From Macrostomum lignano (lineage: Eukaryota): DNA of 64,000 bases. Every line of letters starts with the position of its first letter. The stretch's first letter is position 1. Positions 14,520 through 61,261 of this stretch are shown piece by piece. The stretch is taken from the NCBI GenBank assembly GCA_002269645.1, contig NIVC01000082.1, positions 434,001-498,000 of the forward strand, in the 5' to 3' direction. The notes beneath the pieces are model-generated. The model was not told the DNA's origin. It saw nothing but the letters and a program-made list of their open reading frames with translations, and searched no databases. The translations under genes were made by a program, and so were the position numbers.

Positions 14520-14699
14520 AATAATCTAAATATAGCGCGAACATCCCAGTCGCTTTTGCTAAAGAGTTCCAGCTGCATTAGGAACTCGCGACATTGAATA
14601 TTAAAATAGTGACAACACACAGGTATGGCAGGTGTCGGTGTTGCAGATCCCTTCTTATATTTGTGAGCTGCTCATTCCAAATCAGCCAACACTACCGCC

Positions 14700-15915: not shown

Positions 15916-15992
15916 AGATCCCTTATTGATATTAATAATTAACAATAACGGCTTTTCTGTTGTCTAGACTATATTTGTGTGTAGAATTGGTA

Positions 15993-21374: not shown

Positions 21375-22175
21375 GTCAGATTAGAGAATCGGGTGTCAGA
21401 TGACATACCGGATGTCAGGTCAGAGAATCGTGTGTCAGATGAGATAGCAGATGTCAGATCAGAGAATCGTGTGTCAGATGAGATAGCAGATGTCAGGTCA
21501 GAGAATCGTGTGTCAGATGAGATAGCAGATGTCAGATCAGAGAATCGGGTGTCAGATGAGATAGCGGATGTCAGATCAGAGCATCGGGTGTCAGATGAGA
21601 TAGCAGATGTCAGATCAGAGAATCGGGTGTCAGATGAGATAGCAGATGTCAGATCAGAGAATCGGGTGTCAGATGAGATAGCGGATGTCAGATCAGAGCA
21701 TCAGGTGTCAGATGAGATAGCAGATGTCAGATCAGAGAATCGGGTGTCAGATGAGATAGCAGATGTCAGATCAGAGAATCGGGTGTCAGATGAGATAGCA
21801 GATGTCAGGTCAGAGAATCGTGTGTCAGATGAGATAGCAGATGTCAGATCAGAGAATCGGGTGTCAGATGAGATAGCAGATGTCAGATCAGAGAATCGGG
21901 TGTCAGATGACATACCGGATGTCAGGTCAGAGAATCGTGTGTCAGATGAGATAGCAGATGTCAGATCAGAGAATCGGGTGTCAGATGACATACCGGATGT
22001 CAGGTCAGAGAATCGTGTGTCAGATGAGATAGCAGATGTCAGATCAGAGAATCGGGTGTCAGATGACATACCGGATGTCAGGTCAGAGAATCGTGTGTCA
22101 GATGAGATAGCAGATGTCAGATCAGAGAATCGGGTGTCAGATGAGATACCGGATGTCAGATCAGAGAATGGGTTG
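21375..22175. repeat. 39-bp minisatellite (GTGTCAGATGAGATAGCAGATGTCAGATCAGAGAATCGG)
   Basis: About 20 units; the source of the RVSDEIADVRSEN repeat ORF. Confidence 0.95.
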
Positions 22176-22354
22176 TCATATTAGATAGAGGATGTCACAG
22201 ATAGACATTGCCGAGTATGTCTGAAAAAGCAGTGCAAAAGAGCTTATTGCCAACATTTTGAATCCTCCAACAAAAAGTATTCAAGTCAGTTATTGTCATT
22301 TGCCTTCATTGCGCCTATAGAGTCTGCATGCTTCTCAAGCGCCATTTTAATCTC

Positions 22355-26457: not shown

Positions 26458-29400
26458 GGTCTGGATTCTACAAGAGTGACATATGGAGTTCGATTTAGCT
26501 ATCAAATCTGGATTCTACAAGAGTGACATATGGAGTTCGATTTAGCTATCAAATCTGGATTCTACAAGAGTGACATATGGAGTTCGATTTAGCTATCAAA
26601 TCTGGATTCTGCAGGAGTGACATATGGAGTTCGATTTAGCTATCAAATCTGGATTCTGCAGGAGTGACATGGAGTTCCATTTAGCTATCAAATCTGGATT
26701 CTGAGAGAGTGACATGGAGTTCGATTTAGCTATCAAATCTGGATTCTGCAGGAGTGACATGGAGTTCCATTTAGCTATCAAATCTGGATTCTGCAGGAGT
26801 GACATGGAGTTCCATTTAGCTATCAAATCTGGATTCTGAGAGAGTGACATGGAGTTCGATTTAGCTATCAAATCTGGATTCTGCAGGAGTGACATAGAGT
26901 TCGATTTAGCTATCAAATCTGGATTCTGAGAGAGTGACATGGAGTTCGATTTAGCCATCAAATCTGGATTCTGAGAGAGTGACATGGAGTTCCATTTAGC
27001 TATCAAATCTGGATTCTGCAGGAGTGACATAGAGTTCGATTTAGCTATCAAATCTGGATTCTGAGAGAGTGACATGGAGTTCCATTTAGCCATCAAATCT
27101 GGATTCTGAGAGAGTGACATGGAGTTCCATTTAGCTATCAAATCTGGATTCTGAGAGAGTGACATGGAGTTCGATTTAGCTATCAAATCTGGATTCTGCA
27201 GGAGTGACATGGAGTTCCATTTAGCTATCAAATCTGGATTCTGCAGGAGTGACATGGAGTTCCATTTAGCTATCAAATCTGGATTCTGAGAGAGTGACAT
27301 GGAGTTCGATTTAGCTATCAAATCTGGATTCTGCAGGAGTGACATAGAGTTCGATTTAGCTATCAAATCTGGATTCTGAGAGAGTGACATGGAGTTCGAT
27401 TTAGCCATCAAATCTGGATTCTGAGAGAGTGACATGGAGTTCCATTTAGCTATCAAATCTGGATTCTGCAGGAGTGACATAGAGTTCGATTTAGCTATCA
27501 AATCTGGATTCTGAGAGAGTGACATGGAGTTCCATTTAGCCATCAAATCTGGATTCTGAGAGAGTGACATGGAGTTCGATTTAGCTATCAAATCTGGATT
27601 CTGCAGGAGTGACATGGAGTTCGATTCAGCTATAAAATCTGGATTCTACAAGAGTGACATATGGAGTTCGATTTAGCTATCAAATCTGGATTCTGCAGGA
27701 GTGACATGGAGTTCGATTTAGCTATCAAATCTGGATTCTGCAGGAGTGACATGGAGTTCCATTTAGCTATCAAATCTGGATTCTGAGAGAGTGACATGGA
27801 GTTCGATTTAGCTATCAAATCTGGATTCTGCAGGAGTGACATGGAGTTCGATTTAGCTATCAAATCTGGATTCTGAGAGAGTGACATGGAGTTCGATTTA
27901 GCTATCAAATCTGGATTCTGAGAGAGTGACATGGAGTTCCATTTAGCTATCAAATCTGGATTCTGCAGGAGTGACATGGAGTTCGATTTAGCTATCAAAT
28001 CTGGATTCTGCAGGAGTGACATGGAGTTCGATTTAGCTATCAAATCTGGATTCTGCAGGAGTGACATGGAGTTCCATTTAGCTATCAAATCTGGATTCTG
28101 AGAGAGTGACATGGAGTTCCATTTAGCTATTAAATCTGGATTCTGCAGGAGTGACATAGAGTTCGATTTAGCTATCAAATCTGGATTCTGAGAGAGTGAC
28201 ATGGAGTTCGATTTAGCCATCAAATCTGGATTCTGAGAGAGTGACATGGAGTTCCATTTAGCTATCAAATCTGGATTCTGAGAGAGTGACATAGAGTTCG
28301 ATTTAGCTATCAAATCTGGATTCTGCAGGAGTGACATGGAGTTCGATTTAGCTATCAAATCTGGATTCTGAGAGAGTGACATAGAGTTCGATTTAGCTAT
28401 CAAATCTGGATTCTGAGAGAGTGACATGGAGTTCGATTTAGCCATCAAATCTGGATTCTGAGAGAGTGACATGGAGTTCCATTTAGCTATCAAATCTGGA
28501 TTCTGCAGGAGTGACATAGAGTTCGATTTAGCTATCAAATCTGGATTCTGAGAGAGTGACATGGAGTTCCATTTAGCTATCAAATCTGGATTCTGAGAGA
28601 GTGACATAGAGTTCGATTTAGCTATCAAATCTGGATTCTGCAGGAGTGACATGGAGTTCCATTTAGCTATCAAATCTGGATTCTGAGAGAGTGACATGGA
28701 GTTCCATTTAGCTATCAAATCTGGATTCTGCAGGAGTGACATAGAGTTCGATTTAGCTATCAAATCTGGATTCTGAGAGAGTGACATGGAGTTCGATTTA
28801 GCCATCAAATCTGGATTCTGAGAGAGTGACATGGAGTTCGATTTAGCTATCAAATCTGGATTCTGCAGGAGTGACATGGAGTTCGATTCAGCTATAAAAT
28901 CTGGATTCTACAAGAGTGACATATGGAGTTCGATTTAGCTATCAAATCTGGATTCTGCAGGAGTGACATGGAGTTCCATTTAGCTATCAAATCTGGATTC
29001 TGCAGGAGTGACATGGAGTTCCATTTAGCTATCAAATCTGGATTCTGCAGGAGTGACATAGAGTTCGATTTAGCCATCAAATCTGGATTCTGCAGGAGTG
29101 ACATAGAGTTCGATTTAGCTATCAAATCTGGATTCTGAGAGAGGGACATGGAGTTCCATTTAACTATCAAATCTGGATTCTGCAGGAGTGACATGGAGTT
29201 CGATTTAGCTATCAAATCTGGATTCTGCAGGAGTGACATGGAGTTCCATTTAGCTATCAAATCTGGATTCTGAGAGAGTGACATGGAGTTCGATTTAGCT
29301 ATCAAATCTGGATTCTGCAGGAGTGACATGGAGTTCCATTTAGCTATCAAATCTGGATTCTGAGAGAGTGACATAGAGTTCGATTTAGCTATCAAATCTG

Positions 29401-30725
29401 GATTCTGCAGGAGTGACATGGAGTTCGATTTAGCCATCAAATCTGGATTCTGAGAGAGTGACATGGAGTTCCATTTAGCTATCAAATCTGGATTCTGCAG
29501 GAGTGACATGGAGTTCGATTCAGCTATAAAATCTGGATTCTACAAGAGTGACATATGGAGTTCGATTTAGCTATCAAATCTGGATTCTGCAGGAGTGACA
29601 TAGAGTTCGATTTAGCTATCAAATCTGGATTCTGAGAGAGTGACATGGAGTTCGATTTAGCTATCAAATCTGGATTCTGAGAGAGTGACATGGAGTTCCA
29701 TTTAGCTATCAAATCTGGATTCTGCAGGAGTGACATGGAGTTCGATTCAGCTATAAAATCTGGATTCTACAAGAGTGACATATGGAGTTCGATTTAGCTA
29801 TCAAATCTGGATTCTGCAGGAGTGACATAGAGTTCGATTTAGCTATCAAATCTGGATTCTGAGAGAGTGACATGGAGTTCGATTTAGCTATCAAATCTGG
29901 ATTCTGAGAGAGTGACATGGAGTTCCATTTAGCTATCAAATCTGGATTCTGCAGGAGTGACATGGAGTTCGATTCAGCTATAAAATCTGGATTCTACAAG
30001 AGTGACATATGGAGTTCGATTTAGCTATCAAATCTGGATTCTGCAGGAGTGACATGGAGTTCCATTTAGCTATCAAATCTGGATTCTGAGAGAGTGACAT
30101 AGAGTTCGATTTAGCTATCAAATCTGGATTCTGCAGGAGTGACATGGAGTTCGATTTAGCCATCAAATCTGGATTCTGAGAGAGTGACATGGAGTTCCAT
30201 TTAGCTATCAAATCTGGATTCTGCAGGAGTGACATGGAGTTCGATTCAGCTATAAAATCTGGATTCTACAAGAGTGACATATGGAGTTCGATTTAGCTAT
30301 CAAATCTGGATTCTGCAGGAGTGACATAGAGTTCGATTTAGCTATCAAATCTGGATTCTGAGAGAGTGACATGGAGTTCGATTTAGCTATCAAATCTGGA
30401 TTCTGAGAGAGTGACATGGAGTTCCATTTAGCTATCAAATCTGGATTCTGCAGGAGTGACATGGAGTTCGATTCAGCTATAAAATCTGGATTCTACAAGA
30501 GTGACATATGGAGTTCGATTTAGCTATCAAATCTGGATTCTGCAGGAGTGACATGGAGTTCGATTTAGCTATCAAATCTGGATTCTGCAGGAGTGACATG
30601 GAGTTCGATTCAGCTATAAAATCTGGATTCTGCAGGAGTGACATGGAGTTCCATTTAGCTATCAAATCTGGATTCTGCAGGAGTGACATGGAGTTCGATT
30701 CAGCTATAAAATCTGGATTCTGCAG
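26458..30725. repeat. 4.3-kb array of 45-bp units with variant 47-bp units and higher-order structure
   Basis: About 95 units of GGAGTGACATGGAGTTCGATTTAGCTATCAAATCTGGATTCTGCA. Confidence 0.97.
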
Positions 30726-30759
30726 GATACTATAGACATAAAATCCAGAATCCATACCG

Positions 30760-32160: not shown

Positions 32161-35100
32161 TCTAGTAAATCGTCATCACTAGCTGATCTGGATCTCTCAT
32201 ATTCGCTCCACTATACATGTACATGTACAGCTTCAGCCCACTGGGTCCCTAGCCTCCTCACACCGGAGCTCAAGGCACAGCGAGTGAGTATATTGCGAAG
32301 TAAAACATCGAGTTCATTCAGAAGCAAGGTGGGTGGGATAACTTTAGCAAGCTGATGATCATGTCCGGTGAGGAAACATGGATCCTGCTCTTTGATCCTG
32401 AAGCAACTAAATCTCCGCTTCTCTTTACAAACGATTACGCAACTTCTGCAAACACTACCATGAATATATTCTCCATACATTGCAGAATTTTAATGTTTAA
32501 CCGCATTATAAATAATGTCACCTGCCTGCCCCCAATAACACCCATTTGGACCACCAATAATGTCCAGAACATATTTACCGTCAACGGCATTCTGACAATA
32601 GTTTCACATACAATATGTACATAGCCAATCCCATTTGCCAACTAAGAATACTTGTCAACCGTATGCTGGTCAATTTGAATACAACCGCTACAATGATCAC
32701 CAATAACCTTATTTGGCTAAATGATCATTGATCAAACAAAGAGCGATACCATACAAAATAGTTAAAACATTAGCTAACTGCTCATTGTATAGCCAGAAGG
32801 ATTTTGCATAGTTTAATTACTTGATAATAACTCTGCAATTAAGCTTGAATTTTTAATCTTCTTGTCCCATGCCAGGCAATGTTTTACTAATATCGTTTTA
32901 TTGGGTCTTGTCAAGGCTTACGGGGGAATAGCTGAGATGTCAAGCTCACGGGGGAATAAATGAGATGTCAAGGCTAAAGTCAGAAGCTACATGTAGTTTA
33001 TTGAAAACTTTTGATTACATTATTTGTTGGCTCCTCACCGGAGGGATCGCTGATAGAAAAAGCGTAATGTAAAAAATAAAATAAGCTTCATGTCGAAGTT
33101 AAGAGATTCATTTGGGAATCCCTACGATGTCGAGGCTTGCAGGGAATCGCTATAATGCTGTAGTAGTGCTATAATGACTCTTAGAGAGAATTACTGAAAT
33201 TTCAATGCTTTAGGGTTAGGGTTAGGGTTAGAAAGTAAACAGATTTTTTAAGATTTCAAGGCTTATGGGGGCATCGCTGAGATGTCAAGGGGGGAGTTGA
33301 TATGTTAAGGCTTGTGGGGGGAATTGCTGACATGTCAAGACTTACAAGGGACTGCTGGGGTAAAATGCAAAGAGACGCTACATGTAGTTTATTAAAACAA
33401 CTTGTACTGCATTTTTTAGGCTCACCAACGGGGGGCGCTGATTGCTAGTGTTTTACTAATATCATTTTATTGGGTCTTGTCCTAGCTACTGCAGTTTAAT
33501 TTCATTTTTTCTATATAGTTTAGTATATGGGATTCTGCCATTTCTTTTCTACATTGCCAGAACAATTTCAATTTCTACTCAAAGACTACACAGCTGTTGT
33601 CATTTGGACTAATTATTCGTATGCGATTCGCTAGCTTTATCAAAACTATTTTGCAGTCGTCAGTTCAATGGTGCTTTTAGCATTAATCAATTAAGGTATT
33701 CAGTACAGGCCTTGGTCTTCACGGTTTCCAAAACACAGGAAAACCCTTGCAGTCTTAAACTATATCGGCTCTTACGGTACAAAAAGCTTCACTGTAGAAA
33801 CTGTACTGTTAATAATAACAAAGGAATGAACTATACTTTTCGAATGGTAACCAGTAGCTTGTGTTTGTTATATTTGCAGAATAATATCCGCTTTTACGAC
33901 AAATTTGCAACCATTCGAGTGATTGTTATAATTTCCTGTGATTTCTTCTGCATGTTGAACTACTCGGCATACAGAGCAATCTCGGCGATATAGATCACCG
34001 GCTTCCAGGAATCACTGAAAATAGCAATCTTCAAGCATTTTACGTCAAAAGCAGAGCACTCGTGCACTGAGTACGGATTAAGAATATCGACTTTAGTTTT
34101 ACAATTTTTAATATGATTTTTATTAGAATCTTTTAGTATGATTTCCAGTGACGTAGAGTCAACTGGGTCGCCTTGCCAGCTGATAAGTCCTTTCACAGAC
34201 GCAACTTGGTCGAGTGTGTACTTGTAGTAAAAGCGAGAAATTACCGAACCACCGCCTTTATTACTTATACGTTCGCCATAACTCAGTCTACTGTACGTTT
34301 TCAAATCCTTATCAATAGATTTTTTACATTCCTTTAATAAAAAATCATAGTACCCGTATCCCTCGCAACTCATGTGCAGCTTGCCTGAAAAATTTTAGAA
34401 TAAATAAAAGCTATATAAAGGTAGTAAATAGAGTATTGGAAGTGCAACTACTTACGGTGACATTTCTCCGTGCCAAAGGTAAGCCCAGAGTCGGGGCATA
34501 GGTCACAGTGTGCCATTCCAATTCGGCGCTTTAGGGCGAAGTTCAAATCGCAGTCATGGCATTTTTTGGAACCGGATTCGCTGGCGTAGGTGCCAGCGGG
34601 ACATTTGGCGCACTCGCTGCTACCTGGGTTGAAGGAGAAAGTGCCAGCTGAGCACAAAGTGCAATTTACCGATCCCGAGCTAGGAGTGAACGAGCCTGCA
34701 GGGCACTTGGCGCACGGGATGCCCTCGGCTGGACTGAACTCGCCCCTCTTGCAGTTATTGGCGCAGCTCACTGAGCCCTCCTCACTCGACGTTCCAGCAG
34801 GGCAAGCAGTGCAAGATTTCTGTCCTGGCTTGTCGGCGAAGGACCCCGCAGAGCACAACTGGCACTGCGCCTGTCTCTCTGCTTTATTGAACTGTCCGAC
34901 TGGACATGGAGTGCACTCCGTTTGACCTCGCTGAGCTGCGAACAAGCCGGCACTGCAGGCCGCACACGAAGCAGATCCGTTAAACCTGCTTGCTGTTCCA
35001 ACATGGCACTGCTGGCACTGTACCGATCCTGGCTTGGAAGCGAAATTTCCTGGACTGCAGAGCATGCAATTCACAGTCGCTTGTGATGCAGAAAAAGTTC

Positions 35101-35377
35101 CAGGAGCGCATGACAAGCAGTGGTGATTTCCCGTTGTGTTCTTGAAAGTTCCTGGTTGGCAGGGCACGCACAGCTTTTCCTTGCTGTCACTCAGTTGGTA
35201 GCCAACTGGACACTCTGGTAAGCACTGCACTTTGCTGACTCTCCTGCCACCAATAGAATGCTTTAATTCAACGCGCACATTGCGACACTGGAAGCAGCTG
35301 GTGTCATCTTTTGCTAGATTGCAGTCGATGCACTCTTTGTGACAATCCAGCAAGCAGTGACCATCAACCAACTTGTA

Positions 35378-36723
35378 CGAGGTGTATTCAAAAAGTTCTT
35401 TTCGGTCCTTTGGCATTTATTTTTAAAAAGCCTTGTAAACAGAATTTTAGCGATTTCACCAAGTTATGTCTATGGCCTAAACGTTCCTAGGGTTTTAAGT
35501 CTCAGTTTGCAACTATGTTAGAGCAGCGAACATTTCTATCAGCTACCACTCAATTTCTTGGCCATGGCTGAATCATTTTCAAAGCAAGACGTTCGAAGCT
35601 TGATGAAGTTTCAGTTTCTGCAAGGAAAAAAGCCACCGGATATGTTTAGGGAGCTTCAGCAAGTGCTTGGCAAATGTGCACCAACTGAGCAGACAGTTCG
35701 AAAATGGTACCGGCTGTTCGCTGAGGGAAGAGAGAGCGTTGAGGACAATGATCGCTCTGGAAGGCCGATGACTGCAACCAACGAGACTGTTGTGAAGAAA
35801 GTGCAAGAGCTCCTGGATGATGATCGGCGACGGACTTGCGAAGAATTGGCAGAAGACGTTGGTGTGTCAGTAGGAAGCGTCCACACCATTCTGACGGAGC
35901 GTCTTCACCTGCAGAAAAAGTTTTGCAAGTGGGTGCCACACCTGCTGACAGGTGAGCAAAAGATGCAGCGAACTGTGGCTTCAAGCAGCCACCTGCGTCG
36001 GTTCCATCGAGAAGGGGAGGATTTTCTATCAAGAATTGTAGCTGGAGACGAGACGTGGGTTTACAGCTGGGATCCTGAGACAAAGGCCCAGTCTGCCGAA
36101 TGGCTTCCAGCACATTCTCCAAGACCTCAGAAGGCCATCAGGAAGCAGGGCGCGATGAAGATCATGCACGTCATGTTTTTTGATTCCCAAGGAATCCTGC
36201 TGAACTGGGCAGTCCCACAAGGAACCACCGTCAATGGGGACTACTACAAGTGGATTCTGCAGGAGAAGCTGCGCCCAGCAATACGAAAGAAGCGCCCTGA
36301 TCTGCTGGAATCTGCCGTGATCCTGCTGCACGACAATGCGCCAGCACATCGCAAGCACAACGTCGTGGAACTCCTGAGCAAATGGGGATGGGAAGTGCTC
36401 CAACATCCAGCCTATTCGCCTGATTTGTCGCCGTGCGACTTCTTCTTATTTCCATCTGTGAAGAAGCACCTTCGGGGCATTCGATTCGACAGCGTCGAGC
36501 ACATTGAGGCTGCATGCAATCAAGCTGTTCGCCAAACGGACGCGAGTGGTGTGAGTTCCGGAATCAGAGGCCTGGTAAATCGCTGGCAGAAGTGCAAAGA
36601 CATTGGCGGTGAATATGTTGAGTGACCGAATCATGTTAAGCAATCTAACAGTGTTTTCATAGTTCCAGTTGTTTTGTGTTCAGTTTTGTAGGGCACCGAA
36701 AAGAACTTTTTGAATACACCTCG
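35378..36723 (+). mobile_element. Full-length mariner (DD34D) transposon, 1346 bp
   Basis: Perfect 29-bp TIRs (CGAGGTGTATTCAAAAAGTTCTTTTCGGT) and TA target duplications at 35376-35377 and 36724-36725. Confidence 0.97.
35564..36625 (+). CDS. Intact mariner transposase (353 aa)
   Basis: WVPHLL, GDETW, HDNAPAH and YSPDLSPCD motifs; 34 residues between the second and third Asp; no stops. Confidence 0.97.
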   Translation: MAESFSKQDVRSLMKFQFLQGKKPPDMFRELQQVLGKCAPTEQTVRKWYRLFAEGRESVEDNDRSGRPMTATNETVVKKVQELLDDDRRRTCEELAEDVGVSVGSVHTILTERLHLQKKFCKWVPHLLTGEQKMQRTVASSSHLRRFHREGEDFLSRIVAGDETWVYSWDPETKAQSAEWLPAHSPRPQKAIRKQGAMKIMHVMFFDSQGILLNWAVPQGTTVNGDYYKWILQEKLRPAIRKKRPDLLESAVILLHDNAPAHRKHNVVELLSKWGWEVLQHPAYSPDLSPCDFFLFPSVKKHLRGIRFDSVEHIEAACNQAVRQTDASGVSSGIRGLVNRWQKCKDIGGEYVE

Positions 36724-39700
36724 TAATTATTGTTCAAACACTCCACCTGCGGCATCTCCTTGGTGAGGTGAATGTCCATCAGCGACACAGACTTCGAGCC
36801 CGCTCCGAACGTGTAGAAAGACAGGCGGCTGTACTGGCTGTCCGGTCGGAACTTGTACCCAGAGTAGACAGTGCCGATCTCGCTGTTCGAGCCCGCCTTA
36901 CCGAACTGCATTAGAACTGATCCATTAGCCTGGTTCACACACAAGAAGTAGGACTGGTATAAGTTCTTGTCTCCAAGTGTCCCCATTCCCTTTTGATAGT
37001 CTCTCTTTTGCGGCTTCATTGCTTTGTAGAATATCACTCCATCCATATTGATCTGCAGGTAGTACCATTTGTGTGGTCTCTTGGTATGGACGCGAATATA
37101 ACAAAGATGTCTCCAGCAGTCGCAGCCGTAAAGTAAAGGCAGTTTTCTTCCCTATCAGGGTCCAGCCTATGAGAGTTCAACCACCGAACGTTGCATGGAA
37201 TTGACGCCGCAGCAGTGGAGTTTGCGCCTTTTTGCCCTTCTATCCAAGAAGCCCTAGCAACCGTGGTACCCTCTATCCAGTCTGGAAGGTTTGGGTTGCG
37301 GCGCTTTGATGCAATAAAGTCCAGCGGATCGATATGGAAGAAGCCTGTCTCCTCCTCAAATGTGAGGATGATGCTCCAGATACAGATCTTAGTCTCAGCT
37401 GGCTTGAAGCCTTCGAGCTGACAGCCTTCGTACAAGTGTGCATGATGGTGCCCTGGCTCGGTCGCAAACCACCTGTCTTTTAGATACGTCATCACATACT
37501 TGGCTTGCGATTTCAACAAGTTCGGAATATCCTGGGGCAGATCAAAGGAAATTAAAAACGGGGCTTTCTTAAGCTGCAGAAACGTCAGTGTGTTGTTATT
37601 TGAGTTAAACACGTCGATCTTGGCCAGTGTAGAGCTCTCACAACCGGGTTGCCCTGCTTTCAACTCGTGGGAGGAGGTTGGGAAAGGACCTTCCGTCATG
37701 TACGCAGCTACGGCTTTCTCCAGTGAGAGTCTTCGTCTCTTTAGAGCGTTCTTAAAGTCTTCTTGGTTCTTGTATTTGCAGTAAATTTTAACCAGTTTAC
37801 TTTTTGTCTTATTGTTAGCAAAGTAAGTCTCCTCATCGAGGTAGTATAGCGACGACGAGTTTTGGGCTCCGTCAAAATATTCACTTTGCTTCCCGCACTT
37901 CCAATACAGCCAAAGTCGCGGTTTCCAGCCGGAAACAGGTCGCCCATGTTCATGTCGAACAGCTGATCGATGGGCTTCAGCTTGAACTCGAACGGCTTCA
38001 CATAGTCATTGATGGAGGCGATCCACCTGTGGTACAGCTCCTTGAATGCCGGAGTGTAAAAGTCAACGAGGGCTTCTGCGATCTCCGGAGTTCCTCCCTG
38101 AGCCTCCACGGTGGTCTGAGTGAACTCAGAGTCGCTAGAACTGTGAGACTCTTGATTACGTTCATTTCTTGTGCTCCTGTGCTGGCTCTCTGACTTTGCA
38201 CTGCTCAATTTTATTGTAGTCGGTTTCTTTCCGCCAAGACCCAAAAAGCCTGTCCGAGTGGTTTTCTGAGAATATTTTGACTGCAGTGAAGAAAACATTG
38301 ACTGGAACTCCGTCTCAGCCAGACTAGCAAACTCTTCCGACGACGCAAACTTGTTTGTCTTTGCTCTCTTTGTGATTTTTAGCTGACCGCCGAACTTTCC
38401 AGACCGGATAAAATGCGTGCCCCAGCGTACTGGTAGCAGAAAGTCTTGAAATTTGCTGGCAGCGCCCACTGAAAAGTAGGACTCTGGAAGACTCATGTAG
38501 TCTCTGAGCGCAGCGAAGTTGATGTTATTAGGCTTAATATCATCCAGTGAAATTTTGTACATGATTACACTTACATACATAATGGCAAAGAAATCGTCAG
38601 TAGAACCTTGTTTTCTTGCAGCCTGGGAATACTGTGAATTTTTTTAGGCTGATTGACTGCTAGTGGTTGATGACGAGCTGCCAGAGCTGTCTCCTGATCC
38701 AGATGAAAGTGAGCCACCCACCGCGCCAAGGCCGCTCCCGCAGGGCCACCCGCTATGGCTCCAATAGCACCACCGACGATTCCACCTATCGCACCGAGAT
38801 TGAACCCAGACGCCTTAGAAGTGCCGTGCTGGCGGGCCTCGCTCAAGAACAAATTTCGCTGCTCTGACAGACCGGCTTTGTCCCTGATGTATCTCATGTA
38901 CTCGTCCGCAGACTGGAAGGACTTGGTCTCAGCTGTTGTCTCGAAGATGCCAAACACGTTCATGGTGTCAGGCACGTCCTTGTCCAGGAAGGTGGCCATG
39001 CTGGAGCAGTAGCGCTGCATCAGACTGGCTTTACGGCTCTCGATCTTGTAGAATCCTCTTCCGTCGAAGCCGACGCCGATGTACGCGGCAGCGTCCAGGA
39101 GGTTCAAGCAGATTGTATTGCCCTTGCCAGGCACCTTGTTGGAGTAGCACTTGCTAGTCTTGGGATAGGATGCACCTGTGCACCCATTCATCAACACCGG
39201 ACCAACTCCCATCGGATAAACATATGTAGAGTGTTCTACCCCCCGTAAAAAAGGAAAAAGAAGTTAATCGTAGGAGGCTACTGTAAGTAAGTACACGCAT
39301 GCGCACTGGATTTTTGATTGAATCACGCTACCAGAAAAAGAGGTTACCAAGAAAAGACGCAATGAGCCATTTTCCCCTTTTAGCGCAACAACGTGAATTG
39401 TAATGATGCTATTTTGGACCGAAAATGCGCCTATAAATACAAGTGGTCCGAAGCGGACCAGGAGCCAACTCCCGACGAGAGGAGAAGCTCCGAAGAGGAA
39501 GCCTTAGGAGGACTTCCTGATCACCAAGTCAATCGAGACTCGGTCGAGTTCTTGCGGTAAGCCTTCCTTATTTGCGCCCGTTGTGTTAGAGACGTCTCGC
39601 TCAAGTCTAGTGTGACTTGAGTTTATTGAGTCTGTTGAGACTCTTGAGTCTGTTTAGACTCCACTGGTTGCAGTCTCCAGAAGGACTGCCCCTGATAGAT

Positions 39701-46099: not shown

Positions 46100-49000
46100 A
46101 TGAACTATATAGTGGCACGCTGCACTTCGCCTAGTTCTGACTGCGACTTGAACAGTACAGATGCTTCTATTAGTATTGATCATGAGAATGGAAGATCTCA
46201 GACTAGACTTATGCCATCATTTTGCTCACGTCAACAGCTTGTACAAGAATTGAAGTTTACCAGATTACGATGGGATTTAAATGATATTAACTACTTTCTC
46301 TATTCACAGGTAAATGTTGTAATATTATATATTTTACTTGCAGAGCCATTTTTTGCAGAGCCATTTTATTTGCACAGCCATTTTTTGCAGAGCCATTTTT
46401 TTGCAGAGCCATTTTATTTGTAGAGCCATTTTATTTGCAGAGCCATTTTATTTGCACAGCCATTTTTTGCAGAGCCATTTTTTTGCAGAGCGATTTTATT
46501 TGCAGAGCCATTTTATTTGCACAGCCATTTTTTGCAGAGCCATTTTATTTGCAGAGCCATTTTATTTGCACACCTGTGCAAATAGTGCTGACACCTCCTG
46601 GCATCACAGCCAGATCATGAGGCTGTGGATGACCTCGGTTGGCTTGGACTGTTGGACAGCCGCACTTTGGCTGTGGCAGCAAAGTTCAGCACAGCAGGGA
46701 CTCGCAGAGGTCAGTGCAGCGCGCAACGCCGCACTGAGCGGCGGCGCGAGTGCAACTGGCGAGGGCGATTCCATAGCGCGGCCAGGCGCCTGTTGTCCCC
46801 AGTCCCTGCTACCTCAACTATGGATCCGCCGGGTGGCGCCAGGGACCATCTGGCCCCAGCTGTACCAGGTGGCCGCTTCAGGCTCGGCACGATGAACTGC
46901 CGAACTCTGAAGGCCCCCTGGTGTCGCACCATCCTTGTCCAGCTGGCCCACGACCTACAGCTGGACCTCGTCTCGCTGCAGGAGGTTTCTATCGTGGCTG
47001 AGCCGGGGCTCCACTATGAGAACCTCGGAGCCGGCTGGAGCCTCCTGTACACGTCGGCAGACAACTGCGGCCGGGGCGGTGTCGGCGTGCTGATCGGACC
47101 GCGCCTCCAGCAGAGCGTGCACTGCATCTCGCTGTCCCCGCGACTGATGCGGGTCGAACAGCATCCGGCTGTTCTGCGCGTATGCACCCACCGCTGCTCA
47201 CCCCGAGGAGGCTCGTGCCTTCTTCGACTTCCTGGCTGGGCAGCTGGAAGAGGTGCCAAACCGCGACACGCTGGCAGTGCTCGGAGACCTGAACGCAGTC
47301 CCGCGGAGGTCCGAGCGCTCGCCCTTTGTCGCGGGACGCGAGAACGCCAACACCGATGCGCTGGAGGACCTGCTTGACCGGCTGGACCTGGTGTCCGCGA
47401 ACACCCAGTTCCGCAAGCCCCCTGCCCGCCTGGTCACCTTTGCGGGCTGCAAGAGAAGGCGGAGGAACGCACGCGGGCGGAATGCCACGAGGAGACTGAC
47501 GCAACTCGATCATGCGCTGGTTCGCACTCGCGAGCACCGTCGCGTCACCAGCTGCGACACCATGGCTCCGCTGGCTCTCCGGTCAGACCACCGACTCCTG
47601 ATCTGCGACTTGCGGCTCCGCGACCAGCTCTACCGACCGCCAAAGCAGCGGCCACGGTGCTACTATCGCGCACTGTTGGACACCCGCGTGAAGCGTCAAT
47701 TCGCGGGTGCCTTCGTCGGCGCGCTTGGAGACCAGCGCGAGGCGGAGTATTCCGACATCAGCACCGCCGTTAGAGCCGCTGCAGAGCAGACGGTCCCGCT
47801 GATGCGGCCAGCGCAGAAATCGCTGCCTGTCTGGCAGAGCGACCCCACCATCAGGCAGGCGCGGCTCAACATCGAGCGACTCCGCAGAAACCGGAGGCCC
47901 ACAGGCGACGCCGAAGACGCATTTGAGCGCCTTCTTGACGAGCAGCAGCAGGCCGCTGTCGACGACGCCATTAGGTCCATCACTGCAGCCGGCCCCGATG
48001 TGAAGAGCCGCGCAGTGTGGACGGCCTTCCAGACTCTGACGGAGCGCAAAAAGCGCGTGGCGCTGAACCTGGCCAGCGACACCCCGGAGGAGCGCAGGAA
48101 TGAATTGCGCGACTTCTTCGCCGGCATTGTGAACGCGCCAGCGTCGCCGCTGCCCGCTAGCTTTGCGCTCCCACTGGACACGCCGCTCCCAGCTGAGGAG
48201 GACTTCTGCACCAGACCAGTCGCCACGGAAGACGTTGTGCTGTACGTTCGGAAAACATCAGGCGGCAAGGCGCTCGGCCCCGGTGAAGTCCCGGTCGAAG
48301 CGCTGCGGCTCCGCTGTGTGGCCTCCCAGGTCACAGGCGTCATGAACCGCGTGCTCGCCGGCGCTTCTGCGCCTACTGAGTGGACCGTCGCGCACATCGT
48401 GCCGATCCCAAAGAAGGCAGGGACAACGCGGAAGGAAGACCACCGCGGGATCTCGCTGATGTCCTGCACCGCGAAGCTCTTCAACCGGCTGCTGCTCGAT
48501 CGCCTGCAGTCGGTGCTGGACCCGTACCTGCGGTACGAGCAGAACGGATTCCGGCCGCAACGCGGTACAGTGACACAGATCCTCGCACTCCGCCGTGTCA
48601 TCGAGGAGGCGCGCATCCGCCAGTCTACGCTGATCATTGTCTTCGTTGACTTTCGAAAGGCGTTTGACTCGGTGTTGAGAGCCGCGCTTCCCTTTGTCAT
48701 TCGAGCCTACCGGGTACCCCGGCAGCTAATCGACGCTGTCATGGCGCTGGACGGCCTGTCTGACCTGTTCGATACTTCAGGGTGACACGCTAGCGCCGTT
48801 CCTCTTCGTGCTGCTGCTGGACTGGGTGCTTCGGACCGCACTCCCCTCGGCTAATGACGGCTTCCTGCTGCGCAGACGCATCGGTCGCCGCCACGGCGAA
48901 AAGCGCCTAAGCGTGCTTGGCTACGCCGACGACCTCGCCCTCCTGTCCTCGTCCGTTGAAGGCGCCCAGCGCCACATCGACAGGCTGGTCGAGGTGGCAT

Positions 49001-52000
49001 CGAGCGTCGGTCTGATCGTCAACACGCTGAAGACCGAGGTGCTGACTGTGCCGGCCGACATCCCAGCGGACCTGACGTGCTGCGGCGCAGACGGGCAGAC
49101 GACCAGGCTCGCACGCTGCCAGCGGTTCACCTACCTCGGCGGTCTGGTGTCCCACGTGGAAGAGGACCTCCGGCGGCGCAGAGGACTTGCCTGGACGGCC
49201 TTTCGTTCGATCCGAGCCTCCAGTCCTCCAGTCCGAAGCGCTGCCCGAACGCCAGAGGGCTCGGCTGCGATAGGCGGTGGTCGAAACCGTCCTGCTCTAC
49301 AACGCCGAGACGTGGACGCTGACGGCTACGCTAGAGCGGCAGCTGGACTCGGCGCACTCAGGGCTGCTCCGTGCGGCCTTTCGAGCTGACGAGAGCGTCG
49401 GGACCGAGGCCCTGTACGATCGGGCCAAGCTGCAGCGCCCGTCCATCATTCTGCGCCGGCGGCGACTTCAACTGGCGGGTCACGTGATCCGGGCCGAGGG
49501 CTACTGCCCCCAACCTGTTCAGGACGTCCTGCTGCTCACCTTGCAGGGTCCGTTCAGGCGGGGTCAGGCCCGAACCCGTCGATACGTGGACTGCCTGCTG
49601 TGCGACGCTGGGGCGCCCGACACTGCCAACGGAGCGGACTTCGTTCGCTCCAAGGCTCTGCGGCGCGCCATTTGACGCGCCCTGCTCTAACTGTGACTGT
49701 GCAGTGTGCATGCGGGGTCGCGTATTTTGTTGTTGTTGTTGTTGTATTATACAACTATGTCATATTCCACCAGATAAGTAAATGGGATGCAGAATCAAAC
49801 AATGAGTGAGTGCAATATAGTATTGGGCGATTAGAGAATCGCAGTGAAAAGATCTAGGAACAAGATAAAATAAGAGATTCGATGGACTGAGTGAGCAGAC
49901 TGGCAGATTCGATAGACTCAGTGAGCAGACTGGCAGATTCGATATAGACTGATTGAGCAGACTGGCAGATTCGATAGACTCAGTGAGCAGACTGGCAGAT
50001 TCGATATAGACTCAGTGAGCAGATTGGCAGATTCGATATAGACTCAGTGAGCAGACTGGCAGATTCGATATAGACTCAGTGAGCAGACTAGCAGATTCGA
50101 TATAGACTCAGTGAGCAGACTGGCAGATTCGATATAGACTCAGTGAGCAGACTGGCAGATTCGATATAGACTCAGTGAGCAGACTGGCAGATTCGATAGA
50201 CTCAGTGAGCAGACTGGCAGATTTTATAGACTCAGTGAGCAGACTGGCAGATTTTATAGACTCAGTGAGCAGACTGGCAGATTCAATAGACTCAGTGAGC
50301 AGACTGGCAGATTCGATATAGACTCAGTGAGCAGATTGGCAGATTCGATATAGACTGATTGAGCAGACTGGCAGATTCGATAGACTCAGTGAGCAGACTG
50401 GCAGATTCGATATAGACTCAGTGAGCAGACTGGCAGATTCGATATAGACTCAGTGAGCAGATTGGCAGATTCGATATAGACTCAGTGAGCAGACTGGCAG
50501 ATTTTATAGACTCAGTGAGCAGACTGGCAGATTTTATAGACTCAGTGAGCAGACTGGCAGATTCAATAGACTCAGTGAGCAGACTGGCAGATTCGATAGA
50601 CTCAATGAGCAGACTGGCAGATTCGATATAGACTCAGTGAGCAGATTGGCAGATTCGATATAGCTCAGTGAGCAGACTGGCAGATTCGATATAGACTGAT
50701 TGAGCAGACTGGCAGATTCGATAGACTCAGTGAGCAGACTGGCAGATTCGATATAGACTCAGTGAGCAGATTGGCAGATTCGATATAGACTCAGTGAGCA
50801 GACTGGCAGATTCGATATAGACTCAGTGAGCAAACTGGCAGATTCGATATAGACTCAGTGAGCAGACTGGCAGATTCGATATAGACTCAGTGAGCAAACT
50901 GGCAGATTCGATATAGACTCAGTGAGCAAACTGGCAGATTCGATATAGACTCAGTGAGCAGACTGGCAGATTCGATATAGACTCAGTGAGCAGACTGGCA
51001 GATTCGATATAGACTCAGTGAGCAGACTGGCAGATTCGATATAGACTCAGTGAGCAAACTGGCAGATTCGATATAGACTCAGTGAGCAAACTGGCAGATT
51101 CGATATAGACTCAATCAGCAGACTGGCAGACTTAAATAATTCTGCTTCCCCACCCACCCCACCCGCTGGAAATCGCAGCTGTGCTCAGTGTGGACTCTGT
51201 GGCTGGTCCGCCTCGGCCTCACAACCGCCTACGCTTTCACTCTAATCTACGTATGCGTCACCTCGGCATCCGTTGCCATCGAAGCGGAATACGACGAAGT
51301 GCCAAATCCGTTTGAAGATTGGACAGCGGATGGGGAGAGTTCGCCAGCTGATGGCGCCGGAAATGCCAGCCTTGCCAGCAGAGGTGCGACAGAGGCTGAG
51401 ACCCAACAAAAGCAACAGCCGTTTATCGTGTACTTGACTTATTGGAATTTTTTAGTGACCTGCATCTATCTGATTGGCTCCAGTGCTATTATGCTGATAG
51501 TGAAGCTGACTGATGGAGATGCCTATAGGCTTAATGATGGGCCATATCTGGTTGCTTGGGATCATAAGGTACGTAATTATGCTTTCATTACCTTAAGTTT
51601 ATATCAAGTTTTTAAAAACGATTAATGTATATGTTCTACCGAAGACGAAAGCAAAGAAATTGGCTTTGCAAAGTATTTATATACATATCGGTAATAACAT
51701 TTTATTAAGCTGATTTTTTGTGTGGATTCGAGGACTGGGGGAGTAGAATGGCAGATTCTGGGACTAAAAAAGGATGCAATGGCAGATTCTGGGACTAAAA
51801 GGGATAGAATGGCAGATTCTGGGACTAAAAAGGGATAGAATGGCAGATTCGGAGACTAAAAGGAGGTAGAATGGCAGATTCGGAGACTAAAAGGAGGTAG
51901 AATGGCAGATTCGGAGACTAAAAGGAGGTAGAATGGCAGATTCATGTACTAAGGGAGTTCAATAAACCAACCAATCAATCAACTAAAGAATAGCAAATTC

Positions 52001-52808
52001 TAATATTGAGGGAATGGAATGGCAGATTAGATTGAATAATGGAGTAAAATGGCACATTTAGAATGAGTGAGTGGAAGGGCAGTTCGAGAACTGAGAGGTA
52101 AAAGACAGACCTAAAAATAGCAACAAATGCTACTTTTTCTACTGTAAGTAGTTAACTTAAGGCATCATTTAAGTTTCATTAAAAAGCATTAATAAATTGC
52201 TAGCGTTAATTTCATATCCACTTACATGTAAATCTCTCCCCTCTCAGATGAAGCGTCGACCAATCAGCAGCCTGCCAGTGTGGTTCGCGGCCCACTGTAT
52301 CTGGCTGGCTATGCACACCAGCTACACCGGCTCCCTGTTAGTAACCTGCATCGGCCTATGGCACTCGTTAATTCGGCCAACCTATGCCCGACTGTTTATG
52401 CACGGCTGCAATAGTTTTTTAATGCTAGCCGATGCTTTCACAACCGGTTTACCATTTCGGCTGGCTTATTTAATCTATGTTGAATTAGCCGGTTGGTTGT
52501 ATTTGGCTTTCTCAGCCGTGTACTGGAGCTTCGATCCGTTTGGCAACGTGCTTTATCCGGGCCTGTTGGACTGGAATTCGCCCAGCTGGTCAGTAGCCGT
52601 GGCCTGTATTGTATCGCTAGTTTGTACTCCAACTCTGCACTGTCTCAGCTGGCTGTTTGCTGGGCGTTGGCGCGACTGGCTGGCCCGGCGAAGGCGCTTA
52701 ACCCGACAGCTGAATGATCCTAGCAGGCGGCAGTGTCTGATTGCACCGCCTGCGGCTGGGGAGACCGCTGCTGCTAAAATGACGGCGAATGCTGAAGATG
52801 TTTGTTGA
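46100..52808 (+). CDS. Rolling-stone-like multipass membrane protein; exons 46100-46309, 51179-51568, 52248-52808 (about 386 aa)
   Basis: Phase-0 GT-AG introns. The motifs ELKF...F..SQ, YLTYW, HGCNS..M..D, FRL and YP..LDW.SP match my recall of Drosophila rost-like proteins. Confidence 0.8.
46336..46572. repeat. About 17-bp array (GCAGAGCCATTTTATTT) just after the exon-1 donor
   Basis: About 14 units. Confidence 0.9.
46590..49745 (+). mobile_element. Decayed RTE-clade-like non-LTR retrotransposon (APE endonuclease + RT) in the rolling-stone intron 1
   Basis: GTMNCRTL, LGDLNA, LDH..SDH, EQNGFRP, FVDFRKAFDS, GDTLAPFLF and YADD (48922-48933). It has frameshifts and small in-RT deletions, and ends in a (GTT)n tail. 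Confidence 0.92.
49885..51130. repeat. 30/32-bp minisatellite (GACTCAGTGAGCAGACTGGCAGATTCGATATA)
   Basis: About 39 units, ending about 50 nt before the acceptor at 51178. Confidence 0.95.
51725..51945. repeat. About 31-bp array in rolling-stone intron 2 (AGAATGGCAGATTCGGAGACTAAAAGGAGGT)
   Basis: About 7 units sharing GGCAGATTC with the intron-1 array. Confidence 0.85.
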
Positions 52809-53699
52809 TTTGTTTGGGGGGGGGTTGTCTAGCAATGGTTGTTAAGAGGTCGCTAAAAACTGAATCCTACTTACTATCCAGGAAACCAAAATCGCAGGTG
52901 CCAAATCTGCATATCCCAGATTTTATATTCAGAGATCCCAAATCCCCAGATCATGTCAAAGATCCCATGCCAATTTGACAATCCCAGACACTGGCTTCTG
53001 TGATCCCATGTTTTCAAGGCTCCTATAGAACTCCCGAGAGTTTCAATACTCCAGTTGCACATCATCAAATGCATATCATCAGGTCTCAAAGAAGTCCCAA
53101 GGTCTATCTATTGATTCAAGTTTATATCCTTAGTGTTTGTTTTCTTCTCACAAAAATCTTGTTTCACAGACTGCAATATGCTTTCAATGCTTAGGTAATA
53201 AATATTGTGAGCTGTAATCTCACTGTTGTTGCACTTTGTTGCGTATTTGTTAAAATTCGTAATTTTTACGCATATCTTTACTGTCATTTTTTTCCACGCG
53301 TGTGCATACTACTTGTTTGTCAGTAGTTCGGTGTTTTTATCTACAGCTCAGTATTGGTTTTAAACGTAAACGTTTACTTTTTTAGCATGTATATACATGA
53401 AGGGTTCCAGGTTATTGGCGCAATTGACACTCGAGTCAATTTTCTATTTGTATATTTATAAAGGACCTCGTTTAATTCATGCCAATTGCAATTTGATTGA
53501 TCTATCATTTTCAAATTATATATACACTGCATATATATAATTTTTGTGTATTTATCATTGTGATAAAGTACATTGTAGTCTTGAATTATTAACGGTGCAA
53601 TTTTTGTTGTATTCATAAAAACGTTCGTTCGATACTTTATTTATACTAGCACTTAAACATGAACAAACATCTGAAAAGGCATAGAAATGACATTCCCTA

Positions 53700-54265
53700 A
53701 TTAACCGCACCTGAACAGCCACCTCATACTCAAACTAATTAAAGCACACACCCACCCCAATTATCCGCACCTGCACAGCCACCTCCTACTCAAACTAATT
53801 AAAGCACACTCCAATAATCCGCACCTGAACAGCCACCTCATACTCAAACTAATTAAATCAAGCACCCCAATTATCCACTCACCTGAACAGCCACCTCATA
53901 CTCAAACTAATTAAATAAAGCACCCCAATTATCCTCACCTGAACAGCCACCTCATACTACTCAAACTAATTAAATAAAGCACACTCCAATTATCCTCACC
54001 TGAGCAGCCACCTCATACTCAAACTAATTAAAGCACACTCCAATTATCCTCACCTGAACAGCCACCTCATACTCAAACTGATTAAATAAAGCACCCCCAA
54101 TAATCCGCACCTGAACAGCCACCTCAAACTCAATGTAATTAAATCAAGAACCCCAATTATCCGCACCTGAACAGCCACCTCAAACTCAATCTAATTAAAT
54201 CAAGCACCCTAATTATCCGCACCTGAACAGCCACCTCATACTCAAACTAATTAAATGACACACCC
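53700..54265. repeat. 50-58-bp array (CCGCACCTGAACAGCCACCTCATACTCAAACTAATTAAA...)
   Basis: About 10 units upstream of the RING exon. Confidence 0.88.
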
Positions 54266-54334
54266 AAATTATATTTATTTGCACAGATACTCAACCTGGG
54301 CCACGCTAGTTAATATCATCTGCTCTGTTTCCAG

Positions 54335-56317
54335 GCTACAGCTGCGGCAACAGCGGCCGCTGCGGCGGCGAGAAACGGCCGCCTTCATATTGGTCGCCAT
54401 CTTCAGCGCAGTCTGCAGCCGTCGTGGCCTCAGGCCTCAGTAGCTTCCTCTAACGAGTCAATCGACGAAAACGCCGCGGAAGCCGGTGACGGATCCATCT
54501 CGGCCTCGCCGCCAGAATGTCGAATCTGTCGCTGCTCGGCTGAGGAGCTGCGCGAACGAGCTATTAGCGACCGGCTCTATAGGGTGAAGTGCGCCTGCGC
54601 CGGCAGTCTGGGCTCCCTGTGCGGCAACTGCTACCGGATGTTTTATCTGGAGCGACAGCTGGACAGGTGACTGCCTGCATCATCCTCACCTGCACCATTC
54701 TCACTTGTACCCGCCTCACCTCCACCATCCTTATCTGCACCTGGCCTCATCACCTGCACCCACCTCACCTGCACCATCCTCACGTGCACCCAACTCACCT
54801 GAACCCTCCTCACCTGCACCCTCCTCACCTGCACCCTCCTCACCTGAACCCTCCTCATCTGCACCATCCTCACCTGAACCCTCCTCACCTGCACCATCCT
54901 CATCTGCACCCTCATCACCTGCACCCTCCCCACCTGCACCATCCTCAGCTGCACCATCCTCATCTGCACCATCCTCACCTGAACCCTCCTCACCTGCACC
55001 CACCTTACATCTTTGTTTTACCTGTTATAAAACCCTAATAGCAGTAAAAACCCTAGAATCATGAAATTACATCTCAGGCTTTACTATTCGCAGATGCGAG
55101 CTCTGCCAACAGCAGATCGGTATCAACGACGCCTCCACTCTGCTCCGGCTTCGCCGCTGGTGGCAGCAATGCAAACAATCGATGCCGTTTTTGAACTTCC
55201 GTCCGCCTAGTAGTACCTGCCGCGCCGGCGTCTTCCTGTGCTCAGTGCTGTTTGTATTGTTCCTGCTCGGCGTGTTGGTTGGCTTCACGATGCAAATTGT
55301 GAGTCAACTTCAGGCTATAGTCAGGCTGTAGTTAAGCTGCGCTTCAAGCTATAATCAGACTGTAGTTAGCTGCGCTTCAGGCTATAATCAGACTGTAGTT
55401 AAGCTGCGCTTCAGGCTATAATCAGACTGTAGTTAAGCTGCGCTTCAGGCTATAATCAGACTGTAGTTAGCTGCGCTTCAGGCTATAATCAGACTGTAGT
55501 TAAGCTGCGCTTCAGGCTATAATCAGACTGTAGTTAAGCTGCGCTTCAAGCTATAATCAGGCTGTAGTTAAGCTGCGCTTTAGGCTGTAATCAGACTGTA
55601 GTTAAGCTGCGCTTCAGGCTATAATCAGACTGTAGTTAAGCTGCGCTTCAGGCTATAATCAGACTGTAGTTAAGCTGCGCTTTAGGCTGTAATCAGACTG
55701 TAGTTAGCTGCGCTTCAGGCTATAATCAGACTGTAGTTAAGCTGCGCTTCAGGCTATAATCAGGCTGTAGTTAAGCTGCGCTTCAAGCTATAATCAGGCT
55801 GTAGTTAAGCTGCGCTTTAGGCTGTAATCAGACTGTAGTTAAGCTGCGCTTCAGGCTATAATCAGACTGTAGTTAAGCTGCGCTTCAGGCTATAACTAGG
55901 CTAAACTCCGGCTATACTTGAGATATTAAGAATACCTGGCTTCATGACCTATAAGTAGATTATATCTACTTTTAATCCAATCCAAATCTTTCGTCTGATT
56001 TGCAGGGTCACGAGCATTGTCGCTGTCGTTGGTTGACGCAAAATCAGACCTCATTGGTTTATCCGCTTACAACTCCTGAGACAGCTGTGCTCAATTCGTC
56101 GAATTCGCAGAAATCCAGCACCGCCTCTAGTAGTAGCGCTGCTGCCGGCTACGAGCCGCTGTTTCACGGTCCCGTATTGCCCGTATTGTCGGCCATGTGC
56201 GCTATGCTGCTCCTGCTAGTTGCTTACAGTCTGCGTCGATGCCTCACCCTAAGAGTTCGTAGGATGCAGCAGCGAGCAGATATTGAAGCTGCAATTGGCG
56301 GCGATCTGGGCGATTAA
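54335..56317 (+). CDS. MARCH-like RING-CH E3 ubiquitin ligase with two TM helices; exons 54335-54666, 55094-55298, 56006-56317; start exon not located
   Basis: Spliced sequence gives C-x2-C-x20-C-x-C-x7-C-x2-C-x12-C-x2-C (CRIC...[15 protein letters not shown]...RCELC), followed by two hydrophobic helices. Splice phases 2 and 0 are compatible. Confidence 0.8.
54678..55002. repeat. 15-bp intronic array (CCTCACCTGCACCAT / CCTCACCTGAACCCT)
   Basis: Lies between the donor at 54667 and the acceptor at 55093. Confidence 0.92.
55305..55900. repeat. 34-bp intronic array (AAGCTGCGCTTCAGGCTATAATCAGACTGTAGTT)
   Basis: About 17 units starting a few nt after the donor at 55299. Confidence 0.95.

Positions 56318-60807: not shown

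Positions 60808-61261
<454 letters not shown>

Follow-up and report, generated by a model that had tools for sequence, protein, structure and literature searches.

A decaying paralogue of a large, probably secreted MACPF protein in Macrostomum lignano and the animal family to which it belongs

Among described animal MACPF proteins, MPEG1/perforin-2 has a beta-rich domain after the MACPF domain and is multicopy in the flatworm Macrostomum lignano, from which 13 copies have been reported (PMC10781884). It is a type I membrane protein in which a P2 domain precedes a C-terminal transmembrane helix and a short cytosolic tail. The complement-like C6 proteins of amphioxus have a different layout, TSP1-LDLa-MACPF (PMC11312191). 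We analysed a 64,000-nt stretch of the M. lignano genome (hereafter the window; NIVC01000082.1, 434,001-498,000), the minus strand of which carries a MACPF gene with a long Cys-rich repeat array. The copy in the window is not a working gene but a broken, 5'-truncated, recent pseudogene. The best overall explanation, which we consider highly probable, is that this gene is a decaying paralogue, no longer functional, of a large and presumably secreted MACPF protein, the intact members of whose family would be lectin-guided pore formers.

The window gene and its relatives (hereafter the family) were compared with the described groups. Like MPEG1, they have a beta-rich region behind the MACPF domain; unlike it, they have no transmembrane segment beyond the signal peptide, and MPEG1 is absent among the 50 listed fold matches in the PDB and the 56 profile matches. 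Membership in MPEG1/perforin-2 was rejected, as the combination of a P2 domain and a C-terminal transmembrane helix was not found. Membership in complement C6-C9 was also rejected, since the coding pieces of the window and the relatives have no TSP1 or LDLa match in Pfam; profile matches to C8 alpha and C9 cover the signature stretch only. An apextrin-type protein was rejected because no Pfam scan that we ran gave an ApeC match.

Layout and lesions of the locus

Six successive long open segments lie between 39236 and 33960 on the minus strand. They are colinear and spread over three reading frames. All coordinates refer to the window. The pieces, named A to F, were searched singly, and intact database proteins were used where a whole domain was required. 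The features are listed below in the direction of transcription of the gene.

39236-38724, minus strand: piece A, N-terminal part of the MACPF region, corresponding to residues ~140-282 of the paralogue PAA55987.1
~38728 (38700-38800), minus strand: frame change 1 (-3 to -2), a 16-nt length difference from the paralogue, not in a homopolymer
38646-38644, minus strand: premature in-frame stop codon TAA, a sense codon in the intact paralogues
38643-37876, minus strand: piece B, MACPF core, Pfam PF01823
37879-37067, minus strand: piece C, the linker that follows the MACPF domain, the first conserved beta domain and the initial strands of a ConA-like domain
~37848 (37822-37860), minus strand: frame change 2 (-2 to -1), a 2-nt length difference from the paralogue, not in a homopolymer
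37070-36723, minus strand: piece D, remainder of the ConA-like (possibly FAMeT-like) beta-sandwich domain
~37068 (37060-37075), minus strand: frame change 3 (-1 to -3), a 1-nt length difference, not in a homopolymer, inside the ConA-like domain
35378-36723, plus strand: mariner element (1,346 bp) with perfect 29-nt terminal inverted repeats and TA duplications at 35376-7 and 36724-5
35564-36625, plus strand: intact mariner transposase open reading frame, 353 aa, Pfam HTH_48, Transposase_1 and DDE_3
35377-34457, minus strand: piece E, a furin-like start followed by Cys repeats of the Ephrin_rec_like (GCC2_GCC3) type
34455-34385, minus strand: intron of 71 nt between E and F, GTAAGT...TTTCAG, phase 1
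34382-33963, minus strand: piece F, last exon, a 140-aa beta domain; the exon including its stop codon spans 34384-33960

The original prediction had described three frame shifts, one stop codon, a mariner and a 71-bp intron, all of which are present. It reconstructed a protein of about 1,280 aa, and the pieces add up to 1,261 aa.

The intact paralogues for which it proposed a search are represented by PAA55987.1 (P0136; BOX15_Mlig029702g1, annotated as a MACPF domain-containing protein), which has 1,548 aa. Its amino acid identity to the window is 90-97% over pieces A-D and ~85% over the repeats, and in DNA its locus (L003; NIVC01002678.1, 121322-126090) shares 94-95% identity with the window. 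L003 encodes residues 1-1448 in a single exon, which is followed by one short intron of ~88 nt at the same place as the 71-nt intron in the window. On sequence evidence, the window holds a paralogue of this gene, with the same subfamily, domain order and single-intron position. However, PAA55987.1 is intact and retains a signal peptide and the N-terminal 139 aa. Its Cys-repeat array is ~160 aa longer (the window array is ~490 bp shorter than that of L003), and its last exon shares only ~32% identity with the last exon of the window gene; the latter is closer to an M. lignano fragment, P0149 (84%).

Matches of PAA55987.1 to the window fall in frames -3, -2, -1 and -3 in succession, and in -1 again past the mariner; therefore, the coding sequence contains three frame changes. 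The first sits in a Gly/Ser-rich segment, at the expected place of the first membrane-inserting helix cluster. All three sites are uninterrupted in intact relatives from three sources, and at the second site this holds for P0001, P0003, P0004 and P0136. Short introns were considered as an explanation of the frame changes and rejected, because the intact relatives are gapless across all three sites and the paralogue is a single exon there. That no break falls in a homopolymer run speaks against assembly error. The reading frame of piece D enters the mariner and that of piece E leaves it; therefore, the insertion lies in a coding exon. The stop codon, the transposon and the three frame changes are five independent lesions.

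The 5' end is also missing. DNA homology to L003 begins abruptly at 39224, which corresponds to about residue 140 of the paralogue. Its first 139 residues, including the signal peptide, have no match anywhere in the window even at an E value of 10, and neither does the upstream DNA of L003. We interpret this as a truncation and not as a missed exon, because the paralogue has no intron at that point. A signal-peptide exon with similarity to the family was not found in 25 kb upstream. A single candidate signal peptide between 39.2 and 43.5 kb is AT-rich and was rejected as a chance match. The ATG at 39212, at which the original prediction began the protein, does exist, but it encodes an internal methionine, since the intact relatives extend ~140 residues further at the N-terminus and begin with a signal peptide.

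The ratio of nonsynonymous to synonymous divergence (dN/dS) between the window gene and its paralogue is 0.15 for the MACPF and middle regions and 0.28 for the repeats, with dS of ~0.15. These values suggest that most of the divergence accrued under constraint on both copies and that the inactivation is recent. The perfect inverted repeats and the intact transposase of the mariner also fit a recent decay. With these two properties the mariner, a young insertion, may be a recently active element; no second copy of it was found within the window.

Alternatively, the gene could be functional, with the frame changes and the stop as errors of assembly, the mariner as a heterozygous or somatic insertion, and the signal peptide on an undetected upstream exon. 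A splice-acceptor-like sequence (a pyrimidine run and an AG near 39237) just upstream of the start of homology is consistent with such an exon, the low dN/dS would be expected of a working gene, and highly repetitive genomes such as this one give error-prone assemblies. The differences of one and two bases could, taken alone, be assembly errors, and this counts against a pseudogene. However, assembly error accounts far less easily for the 16-nt difference, the stop codon, the truncation and the transposon, and a functional gene would have to accommodate all five lesions at once. The uninterrupted exon of the paralogue and the 25 kb searched upstream likewise leave little room for an additional 5' exon. 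We therefore regard a functional gene as very improbable and retain the interpretation of the locus as a recent pseudogene.

Other M. lignano copies of the family are also damaged. Pieces C and D are 96-99% identical to the M. lignano proteins P0026 (PAA74317.1) and P0045 (A0A1I8JDZ1), and piece D alone is 98-99% identical to them. In the P0026 locus (L004; NIVC01000957.1, 9668-12890), the signal peptide is kept while residues 28-584, including the MACPF domain, have been lost in frame, so that the codons for residues 1-27 of P0136 run in the same frame into residue 585. The locus still has the middle region, along with the repeats and the C-terminal domain. This locus could encode a MACPF-less secreted lectin-like protein, or it could be another decaying copy. 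The gene model of P0045 fuses the reverse transcriptase and RNase H of a retroelement to the second half of a MACPF-family gene; either a mobile element has disrupted this paralogue, or the model is mispredicted.

The surroundings of the gene are rich in repeats. A segment of ~550 bp downstream of it (32909-33457) is 82-87% identical to L003 18916-20395 and L004 16976-18444; its distance from the stop codon differs from that in both paralogues, and it may be a remnant of synteny or a repeat common to the three loci. Minisatellite arrays, dozens in number and with repeat units of 15-237 nt, occupy 3139-30727 and 46331-61261, the largest of which is at 26460-30727 (45-nt unit, 94 copies). The long apparent open reading frames at 9229-10182, 14594-15967, 21393-22184 and 26596-29509 are minisatellite arrays, and their Pfam matches are artefacts. 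A GC-rich block (57-62% GC) at 46989-49389 contains a reverse-transcriptase open reading frame (RVT_1, E 3e-14) and is presumably a retroelement. Neighbouring host genes are represented by exon-sized matches, one at 2273-3088 to the Symplekin/PTA1 N-terminal domain (E 1.8e-36) and one at 59071-59712 to the end of an amiloride-sensitive sodium channel (ASC; E 4e-7). With these host genes, the reverse transcriptase and the minisatellites, the content of the window is eukaryotic. An Rfam scan of the window gave no match.

Domain architecture

Piece B matches the MACPF profile PF01823 with an E value of 2.5e-13 and 51.1 bits against a cut-off of 21.5, and the intact relatives score 55-79 bits. The signature W-G-T-H-F-x6-G-G, on which the domain had originally been recognised, is found at 38424-38386 as W-G-T-H-F-IRSGKF-G-G. 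Its G-T-H and F-G-G residues are invariant in 15 aligned members from five phyla. Profile matches of the family MACPF domain to solved structures (C8 alpha, GNIP1Aa, C9 and perforin-1; E 5e-5 to 0.02) are restricted to the signature region, suggesting that it forms a distinct clade. Pieces A, C, D and F have no significant match in Pfam; those of piece A are sub-threshold chance matches, and A, D and F were scanned up to an E value of 10.

The MACPF domain is followed by a conserved, beta-rich middle region of ~330 aa with two domains; in the window, the conserved beta-rich stretch amounts to ~390 aa. A model of it was built from residues 1-330 of the intact protein P0026 with a family alignment of 19 sequences (mean pLDDT, the predicted local distance difference test, 75.8). 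In Foldseek searches against the PDB, the model matched SPRY domains and legume lectins, the sandwich at the C-terminus of GH32 levanases, GH16 enzymes and the thrombospondin-type L-lectin domain, with E values of 5e-5 to 1e-3. The second domain of the region thus models as a ConA-like jelly roll, that is, a beta-sandwich. The original prediction had proposed a farnesoic acid O-methyltransferase-like (FAMeT-like) fold for this segment. One of the 19 family members does approach the threshold of the corresponding profile PF12248 (Methyltransf_FA; 22.0 bits against a cut-off of 24.2, E 1.4e-4, HMM positions 3-127 of 140), whereas the window pieces, P0026, P0003 and P0004 have no match to it even at an E value of 10. 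The evidence for this fold is therefore weak.

Piece E begins with a furin-like stretch and matches the Ephrin_rec_like profile PF07699 in nine stretches (120 bits, E 3.1e-35). The 12-13 Cys repeats counted initially resolve into 11 regular 17-residue units of the form C-x2-C-x2-G-x-[FYSA] and ~4 degenerate ones. In the mastigoneme protein Mst1 (PDB 8tx1) such repeats form a rod, and those of piece E match them with an E value of 7e-39. The shared repeat type supports a rigid, disulfide-rich and elongated structure, and the earlier term "stalk" is reasonable on this ground. Mst1 itself is a protein of flagellar hair filaments and has no MACPF domain.

Piece F shares 84% identity with P0149 and ~32% with the C-terminal end of P0026. 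Its similarity to the C-terminus of P0004 is weak (hhalign E 0.02); the latter in turn resembles F5_F8_type_C_2 weakly (E 0.019), and it also matches a bona fide F5/8C domain, that of the amphioxus protein P0010. A model of the last exon was obtained from an alignment of four sequences, with a mean pLDDT of 60 and values of 70-80 in the core. Foldseek related it to CBM32, F5/8C, a pneumococcal fucose-binding module and the lectin domain of lectinolysin, with E values of 5e-4 to 1e-2, a TM-score of ~0.45-0.5 and a root-mean-square deviation (rmsd) of ~3.2 Å over ~100 columns. On the lectinolysin lectin domain (3lek) the rmsd is 3.2 Å over 99 columns. A galactose-binding-like domain is therefore likely but unproven for the last exon. 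With the ConA-like sandwich and the CBM32-like end, the lectin-like modules that had been suggested for this protein appear plausible.

No hydrophobic 19-mer of transmembrane strength occurs in piece E or F. In the intact relatives, the strongest hydrophobic segment is the N-terminal signal peptide, and no other segment has transmembrane strength. The predicted order of a MACPF domain, beta-rich domains, long Cys-rich repeats and a C-terminal beta domain, without a membrane anchor, is thus borne out. The intact proteins are predicted to begin with a signal peptide and a conserved N-terminal stretch of ~140 aa, followed by the MACPF domain, the two-domain beta region and a variable C-terminal part. 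In the subfamily of the window gene, this last part is modelled as a rod of Ephrin_rec_like Cys repeats followed by a small galactose-binding-like domain. The signal peptides of the intact relatives agree with the proposal of a secreted protein, but the window locus itself encodes no working secreted protein.

Distribution of the family

An exhaustive HMMER search, for which the intact fragment P0001 served as seed, identified 127 relatives. A word-index search had returned only two proteins for piece B and none for piece C, despite the presence of P0001 at 45% identity. The MACPF domain and the middle region are colinear in more than 40 proteins from five phyla, and the proteins of the family have 900-1,900 aa. 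Sources include M. lignano (at least two subfamilies), Branchiostoma species (many copies), Lingula anatina, the hemichordate Glandiceps talaboti and Nematostella vectensis, for example XP_035696659.1 (Branchiostoma), XP_013392189.1 (Lingula), XP_077985079.1 (Glandiceps) and A7RF42 (Nematostella). Further members occur in several metagenome or run assemblies. Over the MACPF domain and the middle region, the window gene is colinear with the Branchiostoma, Lingula, Glandiceps and Nematostella proteins at 30-38% identity. P0136, P0003, P0004 and the amphioxus and Lingula proteins can each be aligned with pieces B, C and D in that order. When 15 members are aligned, invariant Cys, Trp and Gly positions occur throughout the core.

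The C-terminal part varies between the lineages. Many of the relatives in Branchiostoma, Lingula, Glandiceps and Nematostella share Ephrin_rec_like repeats with the window gene, but their C-terminal modules otherwise differ. In Macrostomum and in its nearest relative, P0004, the repeats are combined with kringles or a discoidin-like end. The amphioxus proteins carry F5/8C, SUEL lectin, SRCR, EGF and Sushi/HYR modules and a weak match to Tectonin. Furin-like and SRCR modules are found in Lingula and a C-type lectin in Glandiceps, while Pfam recognises no module in this part of the Nematostella protein.

The original prediction did not recognise the domain order from named perforins, complement or MPEG1. 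The order has precedents, because it is already present in public databases in proteins of several phyla; however, it has no name there. All of the relatives are annotated as uncharacterised or hypothetical, and our literature search found no paper naming or testing the family, or naming the architecture of MACPF domain and middle region.

The best word-index match, P0001, is labelled as a protein of a metagenome-assembled genome of Kangiellaceae. It is encoded end to end on a contig of only 1,250 bp (L001; GCA_036350755.1, JAZBNS010001879.1) and shares 59% identity with piece B and 45% with piece C. This label, together with the almost intronless M. lignano gene (1,448 codons in one exon), could be taken to mean that the family gene was acquired from bacteria. 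However, the short contig is most likely a mis-binned animal fragment, the named relatives are all metazoan, and the amphioxus genes contain introns (a 364-aa product extends over 6.7 kb). An origin in bacteria is thus extremely improbable, and we treat the family as an animal one.

Proposed function and comparison with lectin-coupled pore formers

The intact members are likely to be secreted, lectin-targeted pore formers; this is inferred from their sequences. Many invariant cysteines point to an extracellular protein. The intact protein would be secreted, and its C-terminal lectin-like head, perhaps together with the ConA-like domain, would bind glycans on a target surface. The Cys-rich Ephrin_rec_like rod may act as a rigid spacer between the head and the core. 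The MACPF domains would then oligomerise and insert two clusters of beta-hairpins to form a pore. Such a protein would be a lytic effector of innate defence guided by pattern recognition.

Several observations weigh against this proposal. The sequence in which the membrane-inserting hairpins are expected is rich in Gly, Ser and Thr and of low complexity. Piece F has no match to a lectin family in Pfam, and the confidence of the last-exon model is low to moderate, given its pLDDT of 60 and its four sequences. Furthermore, several animal MACPF proteins, namely the astrotactins, BRINPs and Torso-like, make no lytic pores.

The existence of these non-lytic proteins raises the alternative that the intact members function in adhesion, matrix assembly or signalling, with the MACPF domain as a scaffold and the Cys-rich rod as a structural element. 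The closest solved relative of the repeats, Mst1, is a structural filament protein, and L004 has lost its MACPF domain in frame while keeping the signal peptide, the middle region and the repeats, both of which are in keeping with such a role. However, the invariance of the G-T-H and G-G residues of the signature in the 15 aligned members and the nature of the C-terminal heads, which are interchangeable recognition domains and not matrix modules, favour pore formation. We consider a non-lytic role unlikely, though deserving of attention.

The original prediction left open whether the protein is a toxin or an immune effector, and the proteins could also be toxins for prey capture or against predators, released from epidermal or gland cells. 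MACPF proteins act as toxins in some animals, and the members of this family appear to be secreted and to carry lectin-type heads, as a toxin might. However, conservation of the family extends to filter feeders that are not venomous (amphioxus, Lingula and the acorn worm), in which its members carry typical pattern-recognition modules such as SRCR, C-type lectin and F5/8C; these are better explained by innate immunity. The C-terminal modules of the relatives are recognition domains (F5/8C, SUEL lectin, C-type lectin, SRCR, kringle and Sushi/HYR), and exchangeable heads such as SRCR, C-type lectin, F5/8C and SUEL are of the kinds used in pattern recognition by invertebrates. For this reason an immune effector is favoured over a venom component, and a toxin seems to us distinctly unlikely.

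A broader proposal can be made from the lectin-guided pore formers. The family may represent a previously unrecognised, ancient (pre-bilaterian) group of secreted MACPF effectors, in which a conserved core is combined with freely exchanged pattern-recognition heads. The core would comprise the N-terminal region, the MACPF domain and the ConA-like domain, and the heads would comprise the Cys-rich rod together with discoidin-like, SRCR, C-type lectin, SUEL or kringle modules. These proteins would recognise and perforate their targets independently of complement, and they would have expanded in amphioxus and Macrostomum and been lost in vertebrates and the classical model invertebrates. We put this forward tentatively, as a possibility that may well prove wrong.

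The locus itself, as a dead copy, matters little; it illustrates the rapid decay of duplicates in the repeat-rich and recently duplicated Macrostomum genome. The interest, which is moderate, attaches to the family, in which a core of ~1,000 aa extends from cnidarians to cephalochordates and carries swappable lectin or scavenger-receptor heads. Should its members prove to be pore formers guided by lectins, the innate immunity of invertebrates would gain a lytic effector arm, and M. lignano is a tractable laboratory animal for the family.

The coupling of a pore-forming module to a carbohydrate-binding module is known from lectinolysin, which has a fucose-binding domain, and from perivitellin-2 of the apple snail, which has a tachylectin partner. 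Glycan binding is a prediction for the present family, unlike in these lectin-guided pore formers of the MACPF and cholesterol-dependent cytolysin (CDC) type. Lectinolysin and perivitellin-2 belong to other pore-forming subfamilies and place the lectin elsewhere, and neither has a Cys-rich rod or a ConA-like middle domain. We regard the architecture of the family as a variant among the lectin-coupled MACPF/CDC proteins.

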